A stretch of 64,000 nucleotides of DNA, taken from the NCBI RefSeq assembly GCF_001194135.2, contig NC_069008.1, forward strand, positions 17,588,723-17,652,722. The letters run 5' to 3'. This document shows positions 27,617-52,871 of the stretch, in pieces; the first letter of the stretch is position 1; every line of letters begins with the position of its first letter. Source of the DNA: Octopus bimaculoides. Its lineage: Eukaryota. The position numbers and the translations under genes were made by a program. Below the pieces are notes generated by a model. That model ran no database searches, was not told the DNA's origin, and saw only the letters and a program-made list of their open reading frames with translations.

Positions 27617-30375
27617 TGTGTGCATGTCTATGTGTGTGTTTCTGTGTACCACTAAGTGCTGGTGCAAGTGAGTGCAGTGAGGGTGCATACCTCCGCCATA
27701 GATTTAGTTATGCTGTCTATCATATTGCTTACAACACCGGCCTGCGATGCAGCTTCTTCAATCATCTGAAGTAAATCTTGCAGGACATCTTTCAGACCGG
27801 TTCCTGTCTCATCAATCTGAGCATGGGCTTTCTCCGCCTGAACAGCCATTAAAAACAAGAGAAAAACAATCAATTAAAACGAGCAAATGACATTCTTTTA
27901 TTCATTTATGTCTTCATCTTTTAGTTAAGAAGGAAGGTATTCTTACTACTGTATCTGCCTGTCAGTCTCCCTTGGGCAGTGCAGCTTAAAACCTCACTTT
28001 TCTCATTTTTCCTTTGAAGAATATTTAGAGTGGAAACCGGTTGGAATTTAAATAAGTAGATTTAACATACCTAAATGAAATAAATCTGCTTTTTTCTTAA
28101 TTATTCTAAAACGGTTAAATGGTAATTGTTTTAACATATCATCACCACCAAGATCCCTTAACTGATGCAGCTAATCATTGAGGTGCCACTCTATATGCTT
28201 TCATAGTCAGCTGTTGCGAACTGGTCCCTTTTCTTCATCATGTGTAGCAGGTTTGTTGTGCTTTGACCTATCTGGGCCTTCATGTTGTCAAACCAGAATT
28301 TTCTCAGTCTGCTGCTCTTTCATCTGCAGAAATGGCTTTGGACAAGGGGTTGTGGTGGGGTACATGACCACGGCAGGCAAGCTGCCATCTTTTTACCAGC
28401 ACAAGTAGTGGCTCCCGTCTGCCAGAATATTAGCCAACTTCCTGCCAGACAAAGATGTTTATTTTGTGCTCTATGTACAGGATGTGCTGCAACCTTCTGA
28501 AGCACTTGGGCTCAAATGCCTGAATTCTTCACTGCATGTCAGCTGCAAGAGTCCAGCTCTCACACTCATGCAGAATCTTAGCAACACTTCATTGTTGATT
28601 ACCTCAATGCGAACACTTATGTTATTGAACCTAGCCATTTCTGGCATCCTACATGTTGATGTGCCTTGATTCTATTAAATCTTAATAACTAATTTATTTA
28701 GAAAACAAAGAGACGACACTGCAAAAACCAAATGTTATGTAACGAACTTCATTAGCTTACAGCTGACTTTCCCAAATCAAGTTCACTTTATCTTCAAGGC
28801 TCTGATGAAGCTATAGGGTGTTACCCTGGTACTCAACTGAGAGTCCACTGCGTTTTATAGTAGAAACAGCTATAAGCTAATGAAGTTTATTACACATAAC
28901 CATTTTCTTTCCGAATCATCTCTGTTTTCTATCACCATTCTAAACTCATTTGACAGTGTGTTCTGGCCCATACGTATATTGAGTCCTACACCAGGCTATT
29001 ATTCTTGCTATGCTTAAACAAAATGTATAGATACATTTTGAGAAAGCGGAATAAATAAAGACAAATAGAATGATAAACAGATAAGAAAATACAAATAGAG
29101 ACAGACAGCCACAGATATATAAACAGATAGAGACAAAGTCAAGGTGCTCGGTGCATAGTTACCTTTGGGTTACCTCCCCCTTCTTTGCAGGCATATATAA
29201 ACTGCAGAGCAGATTCCAGTACAGTTTTAGTAAAATCCAGCGTTGATAACAGTTGTTTAGAGTTCATCATTTTGGATGCGGCGCCAATGGCACCTTCCGC
29301 CAGAGGCCCGAGGTAATTGGTTAAGAAGGAGATCTGGAAATAGAGGCACACATAATTATAAATAATAACAATAATAACCCTTTCTACTAAATAAAGGCAC
29401 GAGGTCTGAAATTTTGTGGGGGAAGGGAGTAGTTGATTACAAGGACACCAGTGCGTAACTGGTACTTAATTTAGTGACCCCAGAAAGGAAGAAAGGCAAA
29501 GTCGACCTCGGCGGAATTTGAACTCAGAACCTAACGGCAGACGAAATACCGCTAAGCATTTCGCCCGGCGTGCTAACCACTCTGCCAGGACACCGCCTTC
29601 TTACCACACAGCCATGCCTACACCTATCATCATCATCATCATGAAACAAGAATGACAAGAAGAAGAAGAAGAATGAAGAAGACAGTTGTTGACTCACCAT
29701 GTGACCAAGATTCTGTGCTTCAGATTTCGCTACGTTACAAATATTGTCCACTTTCTCGATAATTGGACAGAGACAGTGGAGCATCTGTTCCTGATAACCT
29801 TGCAGCGTCTTCTCGTTGNNNNNNNNNNNNNNNNNNNNNNNNNNNNNNNNNNNNNNNNNNNNNNNNNNNNNNNNNNNNNNNNNNNNNNNNNNNNNNNNNN
29901 NNNNNNNNNNNNNNNNNNNNNNNNNNNNNNNNNNNNNNNNNNNNNNNNNNNNNNNNNNNNNNNNNNNNNNNNNNNNNNNNNNNNNNNNNNNNNNNNNNNN
30001 NNNNNNNNNNNNNNNNNNNNNNNNNNNNNNNNNNNNNNNNNNNNNNNNNNNNNNNNNNNNNNNNNNNNNNNNNNNNNNNNNNNNNNNNNNNNNNNNNNNN
30101 NNNNNNNNNNNNNNNNNNNNNNNNNNNNNNNNNNNNNNNNNNNNNNNNNNNNNNNNNNNNNNNNNNNNNNNNNNNNNNNNNNNNNNNNNNNNNNNNNNNN
30201 NNNNNNNNNNNNNNNNNNNNNNNNNNNNNNNNNNNNNNNNNNNNNNNNNNNNNNNNNNNNNNNNNNNNNNNNNNNNNNNNNNNNNNNNNNNNNNNNNNNN
30301 NNNNNNNNNNNNNNNNNNNNNNNNNNNNNNNNNNNNNNNNNNNNNNNNNNNNNNNNNNNNNNNNNNNNNNNNNNN

Positions 30376-30424
<49 letters not shown>

Positions 30425-32570
30425 CGAAATCATAGTCATGGCTGATGCTGGTGTCACGTAACTGTCATGTAAAAAGCCCCTTTTGAGCGCTGAGCCACAT
30501 GGGGGAAAAGTGGCTGATGCCAGTGGCACATGAAAAGCTCCTTTCGAGTGTTGGGTGTCATGAGTAATCCTCATGGTGGACTAGCATCCCATCCAGGGAG
30601 AAACCAGAAAACTGGCCCTACGCTCCATACAGAGTAATGTAGACTAACCCATCGTCTGTCATTCCTGAAACCAGCCCTGCACCACCACACACAGAAGTGA
30701 CCACAAGTGAGGTTTGGCACCAAAGAGGGAACAACACAAATACTGGAAAAAGATGAGTTTAGTGAAAGCTTCACTTACTTTATGGAAGATACCAATTTCT
30801 TCATGGCATCAGAGACACTCTTGGAATGGTTAGAATACAACTGGTAGGTTGAAGGATCTTTAGGGTTGACAGCCAGTTGTTTAGCAGCTTGAAGCATATG
30901 GCAGGCACCGTCTATCATTGACATGCCGGCCAAAGTGATCGGTTCTTGAGCTTTTTGAGCCTGTTCAAACAGAACAAACATTATTATTATTACAAATTTT
31001 CTTTATGCAAAGAAAGCATCATTAAATAAAATAAAAATGTATTTATCTCATAGCTTTGAGATTTCAACGACATTGTAGGGTAAGTTTGAGAGGCCAGACA
31101 TGGCCAGTCTGAATATAAAGCAGGTAGAACATTTGGGCCCAATATGGCTGATTTACATGTTAAAGGGTTCAAGAGAGTAGGGAGTTTGTTGAGAGGAGAT
31201 TTAGCCGTTACATTGTGCAAGGTCAAGTAACTACATAGAAGCTCTCTCATTGGTTCACGTGGTCCCTATTTTAACCCTTTAGCATTCAGATTATTCTCAG
31301 CAAATGTAATGCTTATTTTTTCACAATGTTTTCAGCTAATCCTCGATTATCTCATAGCTTTGAGATTTCAATGGTGTGATTAGAATGACATTGCAGAGTA
31401 GGTGTGAAAGGCAGGATCTGGCCAGTTTGAACATAAAACAGGGAGAATATTTGTGCTGAAGACGACTGGTTTAAATGGTAAAAGATTGAAGTAAATTTTG
31501 CTATTTCTCACAGATCAACCCCCCCTACCCCATATAGTAGCCCCTGTTGGCCCTTACCTCTGTACTGATCTTAGCGGGGACACTTGCAAAGTCAGGTGAA
31601 GAAGCAAAACAAGTCAATTCGTCAACAGCCTTGAGGAGGGGCACTGCAGCTTTTGCACAATTTTGGCGGTTTTCTTCAGTGAAATCAATGTCTAGGTTCT
31701 GTAAAGAGACACGAGAAATTGATAATGATAATTACAGCATCAGTAATAATAATAATAATTTATTCCTTTATTAGCCACAAGGGCTCACGTACAAAACATT
31801 GACATACAACAACATAAAAGACAAAAACAGGATGGTACAAAGGGTTTTACAGTGTGTAAACGATATAATTAAAAATTACATTAAACTCCCAACAGGGGAG
31901 GTGCTTTAAGGTCCTTGTGGAAAAACCCATAAAAGCCACAGGTGCCTGAACAACAGGGTAAGAGCCCTTCTTTTTTTTACAGGTACACACTGGCCATTCT
32001 TCCAACATTCACCCACCTTTCAACAAACTCAACAGGTANNNNNNNNNNNNNNNNNNNNNNNNNNNNNNNNNNNNNNNNNNNNNNNNNNNNNNNNNNNNNN
32101 NNNNNNNNNNNNNNNNNNNNNNNNNNNNNNNNNNNNNNNNNNNNNNNNNNNNNNNNNNNNNNNNNNNNNNNNNNNNNNNNNNNNNNNNNNNNNNNNNNNN
32201 NNNNNNNNNNNNNNNNNNNNNNNNNNNNNNNNNNNNNNNNNNNNNNNNNNNNNNNNNNNNNNNNNNNNNNNNNNNNNNNNNNNNNNNNNNNNNNNNNNNN
32301 NNNNNNTGACGATGCTAGTCGGCAGGCATTACATAGGGCAGATGTGTGTTTAGCAACAACAGTAGCAGCAGAGAGGACCTAGCGGAGGCACGCAAGCAGA
32401 AAGAAACAATAAGGAAACCAGTTAGGGAGAGAGAGAGATTTTAAACAAATTGATAAAAAAGGGATCACAATAAACAAAAACTGGGTTTCCTTTACAGTTG
32501 GTGGTGGTGGGCATTAGCTTCATAATTAGGGAAAAATAGAGAGCATACAGCTATACATACATCCGTATAG

Positions 32571-44080: not shown

Positions 44081-46061
44081 CATACACACACACACAGCTA
44101 TATCTAAATATCTATCTATCTACCTTCCTACCTATCTATATACCATCATCATCATCATCATGAACATTGTAATCACCATCATCACCACCACAATCTCTTG
44201 TAAATATGGCACAAGGTCAGAAATTTTAAAGGAAAGGGGTCAGTTAATTATATTGACCCCATGTGCTTGACTGTCACTCTACAGTAAATATTCTGCTCAA
44301 TACCACAGATTTGCTGGTCAGTTGTTTGACCATAACCAGTTGAGCATGTCCCTTGGTGGCTGACGATATGTGCATCTCTGATCATGAGCAGAAGTAGTGG
44401 GGGAGCATCATAGCCATGTGTTGAGAGTAATTCTTTGGGGTTTGAATAATTCATCTTTGGAAACATGGGTGTTTTATTCAACAGCCTTAAACAACCCTTA
44501 TTCAGGGACCTGTTGAGCAGGATGGGCTACTCAACCTGAAGCAAATTTTGAGTCCCACCTGCAAGGTCATGCGCTGGTTATCTTGATATGAGATCACCAT
44601 GTCATGCACATGTGGTTGTGATGCATGTGCCTGGTGTGCCCTTATCAGACGGGTAGTCATGATGGGTATACTGGGCTTCGACTAATTGTACCCCAGTGTC
44701 ACTTTGATGGCATATGCTGCTCTCTCACTCAATAATAATAATGTATACAGTGAGTTTCTTTGCCCTAGGTGTTGGGAAGACACTCAGCAAGGAATGGAAA
44801 CAAAACTGAAAGAAGACAATAATAATAATTCCAAACAAAAATAATTACAAAATGCCAAACAAAAGTGTTGATAATGACAATGGTGATGACAAAAAAGAAA
44901 ACTCAACAACCAGTGATGTCAAAAACAATAATTATAGCCATGTGATTACTACAGCGTTTACTGTGGCAAGAGGGATTGTGGAAGGTGGGAGAGGAGGGAG
45001 TGACTGGCAGCAGTAGTACTAATAATAAATAAAAACAACCGAAAATAAGTAAACAAACAAAAGGAAGAGGTAAAACAGGAATGGAGAAAGGAAGGAAAGG
45101 AGGCACAAAAGATGGGAGGAGTAAAAAAAAGGGAGGAGAGAGAACTAAAGTAGAGGAGGACAAAAGAGAGGTAGAGAGAGGTAGAGAGAGAGGTAGAGAG
45201 AGAGAGGTAGAGAGAGAGAGGTAGAGAGAGAGAGAGAGAGAGACGTAGAGATGAAATCTTACCATGGCACGGCTGTTCCAGGAAGCGTAATACTTAAGAG
45301 AAGAATTAAGAAGTTTAATTAGAAGTTAGAGACTGCGAGGATTAAGACGACAGGGGACAGAACAGGACGGAACCGGTCGACTGACATTGACGTACAGGTT
45401 ATATATACACACACACACAAATACATATGTATGTAAAAATATATATACACACACAAATATGTACACACATATATATTACTACACATACAGAGATATATGC
45501 ACAATTATACACATACATAGACACACATATACATACATATATATACAAACACATATACATAGAAATATATGTATATACACACATATACATACATATTTAT
45601 CTACACATAACTACATATACGTGTACACATATACATAACCTTACATAATGTACAAATGTAACATACACATAGCCATATACACATATATACACATATGTAT
45701 ACATATACACATACATTGACTTATACACACAGATACATACATTAAAAGAGAAATGGGGTGGCTGGATTAGAACCGCTGCAAGCAGCACCTTAGCATAGCT
45801 GGTTGCAAGCTTGGCATTGTTGGTTTTATGTGTGTGTGTGTGTGTGTGGATCCTTGTATTGTAAACAAGAGTAAACGATATTCAAGTGGTGTTATTTGTT
45901 TGCAGTCTTCTGCGTAAACATGTCCAGGCATTGAGCTGTTTAGGGCTGAAAGAATTGAGGGGAACATTACCCAGCTTGGAAACAGGTGGCCGTTGATGGT
46001 GCATCTGTATGTATGTATTCTGCATATTCATGTACTTGCATGTCCGTGTTTTTGTGTATTT

Positions 46062-46095
<34 letters not shown>

Positions 46096-49000
46096 CACCT
46101 CTGTCTCCTTGTGTGTGCATGTCTGAGTGTGTGGATGTGCATCTCCATATGTGTCCTTGTGTGAAGCAAAGTGTGTGTGCGTATACATGGTCGTGTTTCA
46201 GTCTTCATTTGCGTATGTGTGCTTGTCTGTTCATATAACCTATATACCTATCTGTCTGTATGTTGATCAACACACAGACGGATAGGTACATAGGTTATAT
46301 AAACAGACAAGCACACATACGCAAATGGAGACTGAAACACATGACCATATATACACACACATTTTATATATATNNNNNNNNNNNNNNNNNNNNNNNNNNN
46401 NNNNNNNNNNNNNNNNNNNNNNNNNNNNNNNNNNNNNNNNNNNNNNNNNNNNNNNNNNNNNNNNNNNNNNNNNNNNNNNNNNNNNNNNNNNNNNNNNNNN
46501 NNNNNNNNNNNNNNNNNNNNNNNNNNNNNNNNNNNNNNNNNNNNNNNNNNNNNNNNNNNNNNNNNNNNNNNNNNNNNNNNNNNNNNNNNNNNNNNNNNNN
46601 NNNNNNNNNNNNNNNNNNNNNNNNNNNNNNNNNNNNNNNNNNNNNNNNNNNNNNNNNNNNNNNNNNNNNNNNNNNNNNNNNNNNNNNNNNNNNNNNNNNN
46701 NNNNNNNNNNNNNNNNNNNNNNNNNNNNNNNNNNNNNNNNNNNNNNNNNNNNNNNNNNNNNNNNNNNNNNNNNNNNNNNNNNNNNNNNNNNNNNNNNNNN
46801 NNNNNNNNNNNNNNNNNNNNNNNNNNNNNNNNNNNNNNNNNNNNNNNNNNNNNNNNNNNNNNNNNNNNNNGGCACATAAAAGACACCATTTCGAGTGTGG
46901 CCGTTTTCGTGCGGGTGACACGTAAAAGCACCCACTACACTCTCTGAGTGGTTGGCGTTAGGAAGGGCATCCAGCTGTAGAAACTCTGCCAAATTAGACT
47001 GGAGCCTGGTGTTGCCATCCGGTTTCACCAGTCCTCAGTCAAATCGTCCAACCCATGCTAGCATGGAGGGCGAACGTTAAATGATGATGATGATGATGAT
47101 GATACATATATAATAATGGACTAGCCCGTCGTAAGACGATGTATGAGGGTTCGACAATTCCTCACCAAACAACCACACAGATGATTTGTTTAGAGTGATC
47201 AAATGTTTGTGCAGACATAAGCTCACTCCCTCCATCAGATTGACATTACCTGTACAGGTGTAACTGAGTGCCACATGTCAGGTGTAACTGAGCGCCACAT
47301 GTCAGGTGTAACTGAGCGCCACATGTCAGGTGTCAAAATGATCGCAGAGCAACGTGAAATGAAGTGCTTTGCTCAAGAATACAACGCAATGCCTGGGCTG
47401 GGAATCGAACCCACGATCTTGCAATCGTGAGAGCAACACCCTAACCACGAAACCTTATGTGCACATATGTTTCCACACCTACCCAAAGGCTGGAAGAATG
47501 GAGATGTAAAGAAACCAGACCTGTAACAAAGCTTCAGAGCCAATAACAAAAACAACACAAATATAAAACAACAAAAAACAACCACAACAACGAAAACAAC
47601 CCCTGCCCCCAACACACACACTTCTAACCCCTCAGCAAAGTAAAAAAAAACATTAGACACTCTTGTGCCAATATTAATATTATTCCAGTTTAATTAAATA
47701 TTTGTTTAATTAATGGATTAATGAATTAATTATGCAGGAAATTATTAAAGAGAGTCTTACCTCTGAATGGGATCGTGCTGGATAAGTGAGGTTCTGGCAC
47801 GCTGTCTGGATCGCTTGGTTTGCTCGAGCAAACTGGGATTGGTCAACAAGACCAGCGTGTCCAGGCTCAGAGGCCGGGTCAGCTATACCTACCAAGTAGG
47901 CAGACTAGAGAGANNNNNNNNNNTATGCATCTTTTACTCTCAAAATACAAGGATCTGGAAATTAGAGGTAACTCGAATGTGGAGTCTAAAAACAGAAACG
48001 GTTCCCATCATTCTTTACTTGTTTCAATCATTTGACTGCGGCCATGCTGGAGCATCGCCTTTATTCAAGCAAATCGACCCCAGGACTTATTCTTTGTAAG
48101 CCTAGTACTTATCCTATCGGTCTCTTTTGCCGAACCGCTAAGTTACGGGGACGTAATCACACCAGCATCAGTTGTCAAGCGATGGTGGGGGGACAAACAG
48201 ACACACACACACATATATATATATATATACGATGGGGTTTCAGTTTCCGCCTACCAAATCCACTCACAAAGCTTTGGTCGGCTCTAGGCTATAGTGGAAG
48301 ACACTTGCCCAAGGTGCCACGCAGTGGGACTGAACCCAGAACCATGTGGTTAGGAAGCAAGCTACTTACCACACAGCCACTCCTGCACTTATTGAGGCTT
48401 TTATAGGGACTTTTTAAGGAGAGGCTGTTATAAGTGTCCTAGATTATTGTCATTTTAGTTTATCATTACTATGCATCTAATAAGCTGACCTGCCAACCTT
48501 TTGTTAGTCCAAATTGAAGGGGACAACAGTGAATGAGACAAGCTACTAAACATTGCTGGTCCCAATTCCATCTTGGAAACCAACAACTTGGCAGAGGTGG
48601 GCATCACAAATGGCCCGCAGCCTTCCTCCAGACCAGACCTTGCTTTCGGTGCCTCTTGGTTGTTCCTCAAGCTGAAGGAAGTTGTGACAAGGATCTTGGA
48701 CACCTTCCCTCTGGAGGACTTCTGTGGGGCCTTCGCAAAGTGGCTGGAACACTACAGCAAGGGCACTGAAGGTGAGAGGAACCTACTTTGAAGGAGACCA
48801 GAGTTTCGTACTTCTTTGGAATTAATGTCTCCCTTGAAAAAGTAACAAAACTTCTGGAATGTATCGGTCCCAGGGTCGTGGATGTAAGACCCACAAAAGT
48901 TACCTTGGTATTTGGTTACGATTAAACAAAATGAATCCTAAGGGTTCTTACCTGAGCAGCTGCTTCAGTCAGACCATTAATGGATGACGAGAAATTTCTG

Positions 49001-49384
49001 ACGGCCTCGCAGAACCCATCCGTGTCAGCTTTCTTGGCATCGTTTGATATTCCTGTCATTGCATCGCCAAGAGACTGCAGATTGGATGCGAGAGAGAGAG
49101 AGAGAGAAAGAGAGAAACAGAGATGAGACTAGGAATAAGGGAATACAGTAAAGAACACACACGTACATACAAGGAAGTGCTGAAAGGTTCCTGGCTTTGG
49201 GTAAAAGAAAATCCAAGTGGATCAGTTAGTTATGGTTTTATCCAACATATTCCCCTCTCAGATTCACACACTTATTGCAGGGGTCCCTTCAGTTTTTCTA
49301 AGCCCTGTAAAAGAATCCGGAAGCTTGGGCCTCCAACCAGGCCGTTTGGGAAACCCTTAAAGCCAGGAGCTTTTCAGCACCTTC

Positions 49385-49419
<35 letters not shown>

Positions 49420-49820
49420 GAGAGANNNNNNNNNNNNNNNNNNNNNNNNNNNNNNNNNNNNNNNNNNNNNNNNNNNNNNNNNNNNNNNNNNNNNNNNNNN
49501 NNNNNNNNNNNNNNNNNNNNNNNNNNNNNNNNNNNNNNNNNNNNNNNNNNNNNNNNNNNNNNNNNNNNNNNNNNNNNNNNNNNNNNNNNNNNNNNNNNNN
49601 NNNNNNNNNNNNNNNNNNNNNNNNNNNNNNNNNNNNNNNNNNNNNNNNNNNNNNNNNNNNNNNNNNNNNNNNNNNNNNNNNNNNNNNNNNNNNNNNNNNN
49701 NNNNNNNNNNNNNNNNNNNNNNNNNNNNNNNNNNNNNNNNNNNNNNNNNNNNNNNNNNNNNNNNNNNNNNNNNNNNNNNNNNNNNNNNNNNNNNNNNNNN
49801 NNNNNNNNNNNNNNNNNNNN

Positions 49821-49869
<49 letters not shown>

Positions 49870-51367
49870 AAGAGTAGTCCAAAAGTCAAAATGCATCCAA
49901 ATGCTGTTTATTATATTAGTCAGATTTGTTGTCTCCATCTTGGTTTCACTACATTTTGGCTGTTTTAAGGTCACAACCATCACATGATCCCCAGGCCAAG
50001 GTAAGTACGTGCACACACACACACACACACATATGCACACACTAACTGACACTCTGTTGGTTATGATGATGACCCTCCTAGTTGATCCAGTCAATGGAAC
50101 AGCTGGCTCCTGAAATTAATGTGCAAGTCGCTGAGTACTCCACAGACACAATGTACGCTTCATGTAGTTTTCGGAGAATGATAATAATATTGGCACAAGG
50201 CACTAGGAATTTCAAGAGAAGAGGATAAATTGATGCCATCAGACTCCGTTCTTGTCTGGTATAATATTTTATCGGCCCAGGATGGAAGAAAGGCAAAACT
50301 GACCTTGGTGAGATTTGAACTCAGAATGTAAAGAGACACATATCGGTCAACACTGAGAACCTGTTTATTGTAGAAGACGTTTGCCCAAGATGCATTGTAA
50401 CGAGCAGTGAGATTGAACTTGCAACCAAGTGGTTGTGAATTTAATTTCCTACCCACACATCCTTGTCTGTATTAACACGTTGACTATTTTTATTTTGTTT
50501 CATGCTTTTTTTTTTTTTTTTTTTTTTNNNNNNNNNNNNNNNNNNNNNNNNNNNNNNNNNNNNNNNNNNNNNNNNNNNNNNNNNNNNNNNNNNNNNNNNN
50601 NNNNNNNNNNNNNNNNNNNNNNNNNNNNNNNNNNNNNNNNNNNNNNNNNNNNNNNNNNNNNNNNNNNNNNNNNNNNNNNNNNNNNNNNNNNNNNNNNNNN
50701 NNNNNNNNNNNNNNNNNNNNNNNNNNNNNNNNNNNNNNNNNNNNNNNNNNNNNNNNNNNNNNNNNNNNNNNNNNNNNNNNNNNNNNNNNNAAAAAAAAAA
50801 AAAAAAAAAAAAGTAGCCATTTCATATTCTCACGAAAATTTATAAAATTTTTATGATGTCAACATACAATTCTTGCCAGTTAGAATTAATCTCCTAAAAT
50901 GGTAAGAGAAATTCGAAGGAGTGTTTTGGTCCAATGGTAGAACATCTCTCATATCCACAGAGGATGTGGGTTCATTCTCAACAAACAGTCTTTGATTTTC
51001 TATCCAGAAAAAAATCCTAAATCCATGATGTTATTTATAGGTTTGTGAGGTGCTTCAAGGTATTTCAAGAAAGAACATACATAATAATATATATATATAA
51101 ATATATATTGTGCATTAAGGCTACCATTGGTTTCATGTTAAGAAAATATATTAACAATTCTTCCAGCCAATCACATAGAAAAATTAGTGTCCATCTCCAT
51201 TTTAATCCAAAATGGAGACAAACACCAATTTCTCTATGTGACCGGCTGGAGGATTGCTAAGATATTTCCTTAACATGAAACCAATGGTAGCCTTAATACA
51301 CAAATAAAGGATCTTTATCCATCAATGCAGAGCTGAGCACCCATTCTTACCATCCAATATTTACGTG

Positions 51368-51414
<47 letters not shown>

Positions 51415-51529
51415 ATATATATGCACATTGCTTCATGTCAAACAAATGAGTGAGAAGTGCTCAATACATGTTGCAGAGAGTGCAGTCCTTTATTGAAAGT
51501 GAAGTCAAGAGTATCTTGCNNNNNNNNNN

Positions 51530-51595
<66 letters not shown>

Positions 51596-52832
51596 CATGA
51601 AAGGATGAGTAGAAAAGATATGAAGAGGACAAAATAGTAAAGAATATACAATCACTTGACATGCAACTAATAAAATAATATATATACATATATATTATAT
51701 ATATATATATATAAAACAAAAAAAACCAGTACAGATAATTTAGATAAAAGAAACAAAAGTGATAATGTTGAAAAAAAGAAAGAAAAAAAAAAACCCATTC
51801 ATATACACACAAGTGCGTTTACATACGTAAATATATACATCCATATGTAGATATATGTATGTATAATTAATGATCACCTGACAGAGACTTACCTGGAGTT
51901 CCTTAGTTGAGACAGTCTGTACAGGGGAAACAGAAGAGAATCAATGAGAGCGCGAACACAGCAGGTGAAGCTTAGAGGTTAAAGGCTGGAGGTCGGGGTC
52001 AAAGGTTAGAGTTTAGGGTCAAAGGTTAAAGTTCAAGATTGTAGGCATGAAGCAGGATTGAAATTTAGTGCGGACGTTTAGCTTTTAATTGTTTGTGTTC
52101 AACAAATTTGGAAAGTGTGGTTGTAGCGATGGTGGTCATAGTGGTTATTTAACCCTGGGTCATATTTGATGCAGTAGGCCTATGGTGATCAAAAGTGTTC
52201 CAGCTGTGACCATCCCATCTTTATTCAGACATAGTATATCTAGGACTACATTATCTAATGTGTCCTTTGCTGCTGTTGTTAAACCCCGGGTCAGTACTGC
52301 TACAACTGACCTATGATCAAGGGTGTTCCAGCCATGACCCATTGTGTTTTTTATTCAGGCACAGTATATCTAGGACTACATTATATAATAATGTATCTTT
52401 CTATGTTGTTGTTTAACCCCAGGTCATTCCTGATCCAGTAGACCAAGGATGAAAAAATGGCGTTCTAGCTGGAAAATATGTTGACAAAGGGGAAAAGGGC
52501 CCAAATTGTTAAGCTTAAAATGAAAACCTTTAAAGGTATTGGCAATAATAGAGATCTTCTTACATTCCAGACATGGCTCTCACTATCAACCAACTGAAGT
52601 GAAGTTGGTACAAAAGAGGCGCTTCACTGCAGTCAACCACAAAAGCCAAGTGTTTTAGTGAAGACAAGGAGATTAGTGGGAAAGATTAGCAAGTGGGATT
52701 AGGAAGAGAGTGATTAAGGACACAGATATATATTAGCAAGAAAGAGAGGAGGAGAGATTAGCAAGAGAGAAAGAGGGAGAAATTGGGAGACAGAGCAAGA
52801 AAGAGAGAGATTAACAAGAGAGAGGGAGAGAT

Positions 52833-52871
<39 letters not shown>

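Follow-up and report, generated by a model that had tools for sequence, protein, structure and literature searches.

Does the talin gene of Octopus bimaculoides carry a small exon that alters the surface through which talin binds KANK? The question is raised by 24 nucleotides (nt) encoding the peptide TVSTKELQ, found within a talin intron on the minus strand of a 64,000-nt stretch of contig NC_069008.1 (positions 17,588,723 to 17,652,722 of the forward strand; "the window" below means this whole stretch). On balance, we think it probable that the segment is a genuine microexon whose peptide is inserted within the KANK groove of the talin region R7, and that its inclusion would most likely weaken KANK docking.

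Sequence and conservation of the 24-nt microexon

The host gene is a talin gene on the minus strand: a tblastn search with talin fragments from other animals gives a colinear series of exons that extends from about 56.3 kb to 30.8 kb, the protein matches carry the Pfam families Talin_IBS2B and TLN1-like_RS, and the named matches are talins. The region of interest aligns to talin-1 residues 1341-1485 (E=1.5e-52; PDB alignment, 6r9t), and the region of helix 36 to residues 1593-1651 (E=1.3e-16; PDB alignment).

The initial annotation of the window had described an acceptor and the donor CAG/GTAAGT enclosing 24 nt that read TVSTKELQ in phase 0-0, between exons ending in MQISR and beginning with SLGDAM, and the minus-strand sequence bears this out. 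The microexon, ACTGTCTCAACTAAGGAACTCCAG, is directly preceded by ttctcttctgtttcccctgtacag and directly followed by gtaagt. The last codons of the upstream exon, up to 53390, are ATG CAG ATA TCA AGG (...VMQISR), with gt next to them; after ctgcag, the coding sequence resumes at 49074 with TCT CTT GGC GAT GCA ATG (SLGDAM), the start of the downstream exon. The 5' part of the gene falls beyond the window, so that the numbers 13 and 14 given to these exons in the initial annotation are provisional. The microexon is free of stops and both flanking junctions are in phase 0, so that inclusion keeps the reading frame. Its pyrimidine tract, ttctcttctgtttcccctgt, contains 17 pyrimidines in 20 positions, its candidate branch points, CTCAT and TTGAT, place the A at -29 and -25, and its donor, counted with the last three nt of the exon, matches CAG/GTAAGT at 9/9 positions. 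With a length of no more than 27 nt, canonical AG/GT borders, a preserved frame and no stop, the segment falls within the microexon class.

This combination is rare in the window. A strict splice filter (YAG acceptor, at least 16 pyrimidines in 20 positions, a donor with at least 8 of 9 matches to CAGGTAAGT, a length of 3-60 nt), applied to both strands of the 64 kb, returned a single match, the microexon itself; first-order Markov randomisations of the window give an expectation of 0.135 matches per window for both strands. Roughly scaled to one 4.3-kb intron, one strand and frame-preserving, stop-free segments, this expectation becomes about 1e-3. The sequence of the microexon is single-copy in the window, and an origin from a repeat was rejected on that ground.

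The comparison that bears most directly on the nature of the segment is with locus L002, a region of a 220-kb ENA contig (ERZ21867824) reached via P0104, a match to the downstream exon. L002 is the single comparison species for the cephalopod-type cassette; scans of JGI metagenomes with the microexon and with the downstream exon gave 0 matches. The labels cephalopod, bivalve-like and gastropod-like used here for the compared loci are inferred from protein similarity and genome style. The DNA of the talin exons is 77-80% identical between L002 and the window, and the introns align at simple repeats only. In the same intron, L002 contains at 6711-6734 ccatccattccatttgtctacag/ACATTCTCATCTAAGGAAATGCAG/gtaagc, which encodes TFSSKEMQ. 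The length (24 nt), the phase, the AG and the GTAAG are the same as in the window, the tacag acceptor is kept, and the donor reads CAG/gtaagc. The two cassettes are identical at 19 of 24 nt, a score that is reached by 0 of 2000 shuffled introns, and the L002 cassette is the best match to the 24-mer of the window in the whole 14.7-kb locus, both strands included. The similarity is confined to the exon and its splice sites (a conserved block of about 35 nt), the rest of the intron being unalignable. One of the five differences is synonymous and the others exchange V for F, T for S and L for M, which leaves the shared peptide pattern T-hydrophobic-S-[ST]-K-E-[LM]-Q. Conservation of this kind marks a coding exon under selection. 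Since a distant relative retains the cassette, we consider it highly probable that these 24 nt are a real coding microexon, which evolution has maintained in the talin gene.

A further conserved element lies inside the microexon: AAG/GAA occurs as ctaag/GAACTCCAG at 51893-51901 (minus strand) and as ctaag/GAAATGCAG at L002 6726-6734. If used as an alternative acceptor, it would yield an exon of 9 nt that encodes ELQ or EMQ; another possibility is that the conserved CTAAGGAA core acts as a purine-rich splicing enhancer.

Whether the microexon is used alternatively in a regulated manner is, in our estimate, an evenly balanced matter. The donor of the upstream exon is weak (AGG/gtttat, 4/9 to the consensus, at 53382-53392 on the minus strand; AAG/gtgagt in the L002 ortholog), and its position next to the perfect donor of the microexon may matter for regulation. 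The regulatory motifs UGC and GCAUG occur at chance level: of UGC, the enhancer expected just before the 3' splice site in neural microexons that depend on SRRM3/4 (eMIC), there is one copy at -47 in the window and one at -33 in L002, which is about what is expected by chance for 50 nt.

Position in the KANK groove of R7 and predicted effect of inclusion

The KN motif of KANK docks between helices 29 and 36 of R7 (PMC4995097; PMC10281804). In the crystal structure, KANK1 lies between alpha2 and alpha9, with its L43 beside G1404 (PMC10281804). Y1389 and W1630 keep the groove open, its pockets are formed by the small residues S1400, G1404, S1411, S1637 and S1641, and K1401 and R1652 are the charges that recognise the LD motif (Bouchet et al., PMC4995097). 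The mutations G1404L and W1630A both abolish the binding of KANK1 (PMC4995097).

In the PDB alignment, the junction that receives the microexon corresponds to talin-1 K1401/V1402, in helix 29 (alpha2 of R7): the final R of MQISR is the equivalent of K1401 and the G of SLG that of G1404. The initial annotation had thus correctly aligned the junction with talin-1 and this glycine with G1404, and the effect of G1404L on KANK binding that it had stated agrees with the published mutant. The insert falls between the groove residues S1400/K1401 on one side and G1404/S1411 on the other. On helix 29, Y1389, S1400, K1401, G1404 and S1411 are Y, S, R, G and S in the talin of the window, and on helix 36, W1630 is Y, S1637 is S, R1638 is K, S1641 is S, K1645 is K, T1649 is S and R1652 is K, so that the groove residues of the two helices are all identical or conservatively replaced. 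The microexon would therefore split a KANK groove that is otherwise predicted to be intact. The window itself contains no KANK gene.

The consequences for the structure were estimated by helical arithmetic (100 degrees and 1.5 Å per residue), according to which Y1389, S1400, G1404 and S1411 share one face of the helix, spread over no more than about 40 degrees. Inclusion would insert eight residues after the equivalent of K1401 and before that of V1402, that is within this stripe of small residues (Y1389, S1400 / G1404, S1411). If they are helical, the eight residues would shift everything downstream by about 12 Å and +80 degrees, and as a result the two halves of the stripe could not face helix 36 simultaneously. 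Were the N-terminal half to stay in register, G1404 would be replaced by S, M1407 by E and S1411 by L. Were the C-terminal half to stay in register, S1400 would be replaced by L or M, K1401 by Q, and V1396 and M1397, which lie in the core, by S and T, respectively. If the insert is looped out instead, it would form a bulge next to the groove. Every one of these accommodations would remodel the docking site of the KN motif and probably make R7 less stable. A weakened or abolished docking of KANK is the most likely effect of inclusion, possibly together with an easier opening of R7 and R8 under force. The idea of a KANK switch is plausible; the chances that inclusion would substantially alter KANK binding appear to us to be about even.

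The closest engineered counterpart is the G1404L mutant of talin-1, considered with the complex of R7 and the KANK1 KN motif: the same helix and the same groove are concerned, and the insert precedes the equivalent glycine by two residues. However, G1404L is a single engineered substitution whose loss of binding was measured, whereas the microexon is a natural insertion of eight residues whose effect is inferred.

Talin has long been regarded as having nearly a single isoform, and its one well-studied cassette exon, TLN1 exon 17b, alters its mechanics; a literature search found no mention of a talin microexon among the papers covered. With the 17 residues that exon 17b adds to a helix of R2, the unfolding force is lower and vinculin binding is higher (Gallego-Paez et al. 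2023, PMC9997659). Like the microexon, human exon 17b is a previously unannotated, in-frame talin cassette that inserts residues into a helix of the rod, and it changes the stability of the bundle along with vinculin binding (PMC9997659). It differs from the microexon in length (51 nt and 17 residues versus 24 nt and 8 residues), in position (first helix of R2 versus helix 29 of R7) and in lineage (vertebrate versus mollusc), and it is backed by transcripts and biochemistry, whereas the microexon is known from genomic sequence. The microexon is a new example both of frame-preserving microexons on interaction surfaces and of talin cassette exons, and a case in which ORF-based (open reading frame) and standard gene models overlook real coding exons of the talin gene. 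If the reading that we favour is true, it would be the first natural variant aimed at the link between adhesions and microtubules, akin to a built-in perturbation of the G1404L type.

The same junction in other molluscs and alternative explanations

Eight distinct genomic versions of the host intron were compared. The position of the intron is common to all the mollusc loci examined and to read-through ORFs of vertebrates: in several vertebrate-like and other fragments, the ORF reads through about 20-40 codons at the junction, and these introns are probably too short for a cassette. Conservation in other molluscs, which the initial annotation had put forward as a check, holds in L002 (19/24 nt, splice sites kept); elsewhere the junction carries a different cassette or none. 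The bivalve-like ENA contigs L004 and L005-7 contain a different 24-nt cassette, SSSEDFSK in L004 and SSQEDFSK in L005-7, flanked by AG and GTAAGA. Their introns do not otherwise align, and this cassette is the one conserved island of any size between them (42 nt, 81%). This SS[SQ]EDFSK cassette and the cephalopod-type one share only a TCT[AG]AGGA core, shifted by one codon.

In the oyster locus L001 (Magallana gigas OY970745.1), the junction contains a 12-nt cassette, cag/GGCCAAGTCTTG/gtaaat, which encodes GQVL, and no 24-nt ortholog of the microexon was found in that locus. The protein model XP_034319992.1 (talin-2-like, Crassostrea gigas) has GQVW at exactly the same junction. This oyster cassette resembles the microexon in that it uses the same phase-0 intron (EKSK/.../LLGDSM) and preserves the frame; it differs in its length (12 versus 24 nt), in its unrelated peptide and in its occurrence in short "talin-2-like" models. 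These models seemingly come from partial, partly degenerate gene copies, and the newer model XP_065937877.1 is without the cassette. At L001 10000-12820 there are at least 30 tandem copies of a unit of about 81 nt that repeats part of an exon (GQKECDNALRQIQVSNTL), and the talin-like exons near this array carry in-frame stops; the "talin-2-like" locus is seemingly a partial talin duplicate that has degenerated, rather than the main gene.

A gastropod-like locus, L011, has a well-flanked 21-nt candidate cassette at 9657-9677, ccccttctttgacag/AAACCCTCTCCACTTACTCAG/gtcaga (KPSPLTQ), seen in one species only, and no convincing cassette was found in the introns of L012 and L008/9. From these alignments, the position of the intron appears to be old and the cassettes lineage-specific and patchy, one talin junction having apparently gained cassettes repeatedly in molluscs. 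It may be that the K1401/V1402 junction is a recurrent hot spot of mollusc microexons, whose lineage-specific cassettes (24 nt, T[VF]S[TS]KE[LM]Q; 24 nt, SS[SQ]EDFSK; 12 nt, GQVW; possibly 21 nt, KPSPLTQ) toggle the link between talin and KANK. This is a tentative extension, which we consider somewhat doubtful; if it is true, splicing would regulate the coupling of adhesions to cortical microtubules in these animals, beyond the regulation by protein abundance or force alone.

Several observations weigh against the reading that we favour, in which a genuine microexon disturbs the KANK groove. The structural consequences come from helical arithmetic and not from a model. W1630 is a Tyr in the talin of the window, and a change of this Trp to Ala abolishes binding. 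The other molluscs have no recognisable ortholog of the microexon (L012, L008/9) or an unrelated sequence, which indicates that the microexon is not ancient in its present form. Inclusion in this lineage is predicted from genomic sequence: 53 talin fragments cover the junction, the eight-residue insert is absent from all of them, and the searches of a collection of 5.8 billion proteins found no protein that bears it. The matches from this collection are short fragments only, none of those across the junction is more than 70% identical to the talin of the window, and for that reason the collection is uninformative for the window's lineage.

The same protein searches bear on a first alternative, in which the microexon is real and constitutive: helix 29 would be lengthened in a fixed, cephalopod-type manner, the fold of R7 and its partner would have adapted, and there would be no switch. 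The splice signals of the microexon (9/9 donor, 17/20 pyrimidines) equal or exceed those of the neighbouring constitutive exons, and no cephalopod-type transcript that skips it was seen among the proteins searched, with the limit on identity given above. However, all the other talins sampled, including transcripts and models from bivalves and gastropods, join the flanking exons directly, and the oyster has models both with and without a cassette at the junction, possibly from different gene copies. A permanent insertion of eight residues into a core helix would also be odd while every residue of the groove is kept. We consider a constitutive microexon unlikely.

In a second alternative, the cassette is real and its function is mainly mechanical: inclusion would destabilise R7, so that less force is needed to open R7 and the R8 inserted in it and to expose vinculin-binding helices, and the effect on KANK would be secondary. 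Either helical register would place polar or charged residues in the core, the stability of R7 is reported to protect R8 from force (PMC4995097), and TLN1 exon 17b acts in this way (PMC9997659). On the contrary, the site lies exactly between residues of the KANK groove, and the cassettes of other molluscs at the same junction suggest that the surface matters. We regard a mainly mechanical role as rather improbable, with the proviso that mechanical and KANK effects are not mutually exclusive.

That the 24 nt are a chance pseudo-exon which is never spliced into mRNA is very improbable: introns do hold decoy sites and the evidence is genomic, but the chance expectation for the host intron is about 1e-3 as roughly scaled above, and an island of 19/24 nt with its AG, GTAAG, length and open frame is kept in the otherwise unalignable intron of L002. 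An intronic element that is conserved for some function other than coding (a splicing decoy, a recursive-splicing element or a small RNA) is equally improbable: conserved motifs that resemble splice sites could by themselves reflect a role in the removal of the intron, but the conserved block is just about 35 nt long, neither the frame nor the length has changed, and the encoded residues are exchanged conservatively. A recursive splice site or an RS exon was rejected, since the acceptor reads cag/ACTGTC, with no GT right after it as a zero-length recursive site would have, and the donor is 24 nt downstream. A small RNA was rejected as well, since Rfam gave far-sub-threshold matches only, which lie in the adjacent TA/CA repeat and not over the microexon.

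Features of the talin gene and a second microexon

The features of the talin gene that are discussed here are collected in Table 1.

Table 1. Talin gene features in the window (positions count from the first letter of the window)
Feature	Position	Strand	Remarks
24-nt microexon	51893..51916	minus	phase 0-0; TVSTKELQ; sequence read directly
3' splice region of the microexon	51917..51945	minus	candidate branch points, pyrimidine tract, acceptor cag
5' splice site of the microexon	51884..51892	minus	gtaagtctc
Host intron	49075..53389	minus	phase 0; several N-run assembly gaps inside, so that 4.3 kb is an apparent length
Upstream talin exon	53390..53911	minus	last part of R6 and first part of R7 (...SDHSYYECLESVMQISR); carries the counterparts of Y1389, S1400 and K1401 (here an R)
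Downstream talin exon	48952..49074	minus	SLGDAMTGISNDAKK...TEAAAQ; equivalents of G1404 and S1411
Talin exon for R7 helix 36 (alpha9)	30778..30963	minus	opposite wall of the KANK groove
30-nt microexon	45263-45292	minus	ttctcttaag/TATTACGCTTCCTGGAACAGCCGTGCCATG/gtaaga; YYASWNSRAM

The same gene contains a second microexon, of 30 nt, in a 15-kb intron between ..SHSE (47758) and VLSAAT (32378), in the linker from R7 to R8. L002 encodes the identical peptide YYASWNSRAM at 13791-13820, with synonymous differences only, and this peptide corresponds to the cassette YYASWNLRSM of the Biomphalaria UniRef isoforms A0A2C9KDD9 and A0A2C9KDC2. Judged by these matches, the 30-nt microexon serves as a positive control that supports the cross-species approach. 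Like the 24-nt microexon, the YYASWN[LS]R[SA]M cassette is a tiny, frame-preserving talin cassette that is found in both the window and L002. Unlike it, the cassette uses another junction (..SSQQQ/VLSAAT), it is conserved at 10/10 residues between the window and L002 and at 8/10 with the snail, and it is present in annotated isoforms.

The Biomphalaria isoforms (P0077-P0079, P0179, P0180) also differ by GTNTQAQ (7 residues) and ICYQ (4 residues), at the junction of R7 and R8. The only match to GTNTQAQ in the window is THTQAQ at 37466-37449, which belongs to a CA repeat, is out of order and is probably due to chance.

The gene is interrupted by assembly gaps at 32039-32306 and 30001-30375 and by runs of N inside 49.4-49.9, 50.5-50.8, 46.3-46.9 and 57.5-57.9 kb. 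From its start at 32378, one exon (VLSAATVVAKHTSALCNACRLASS) continues into the gap at 32039-32306, so that part of R8 is absent from the assembly and the window does not yield a complete R7R8.

Last, we note that the upstream exon, which is a single exon of 522 nt in the window, corresponds to three exons in L002 (1336-1685, 4608-4698 and 5578-5674), and that the bivalve-like and gastropod-like loci split it at equivalent positions, after ..AQAAR and after ..RQIQ/E. The split in the other loci, as opposed to the single exon of the window, suggests that two introns were lost in the window's lineage.
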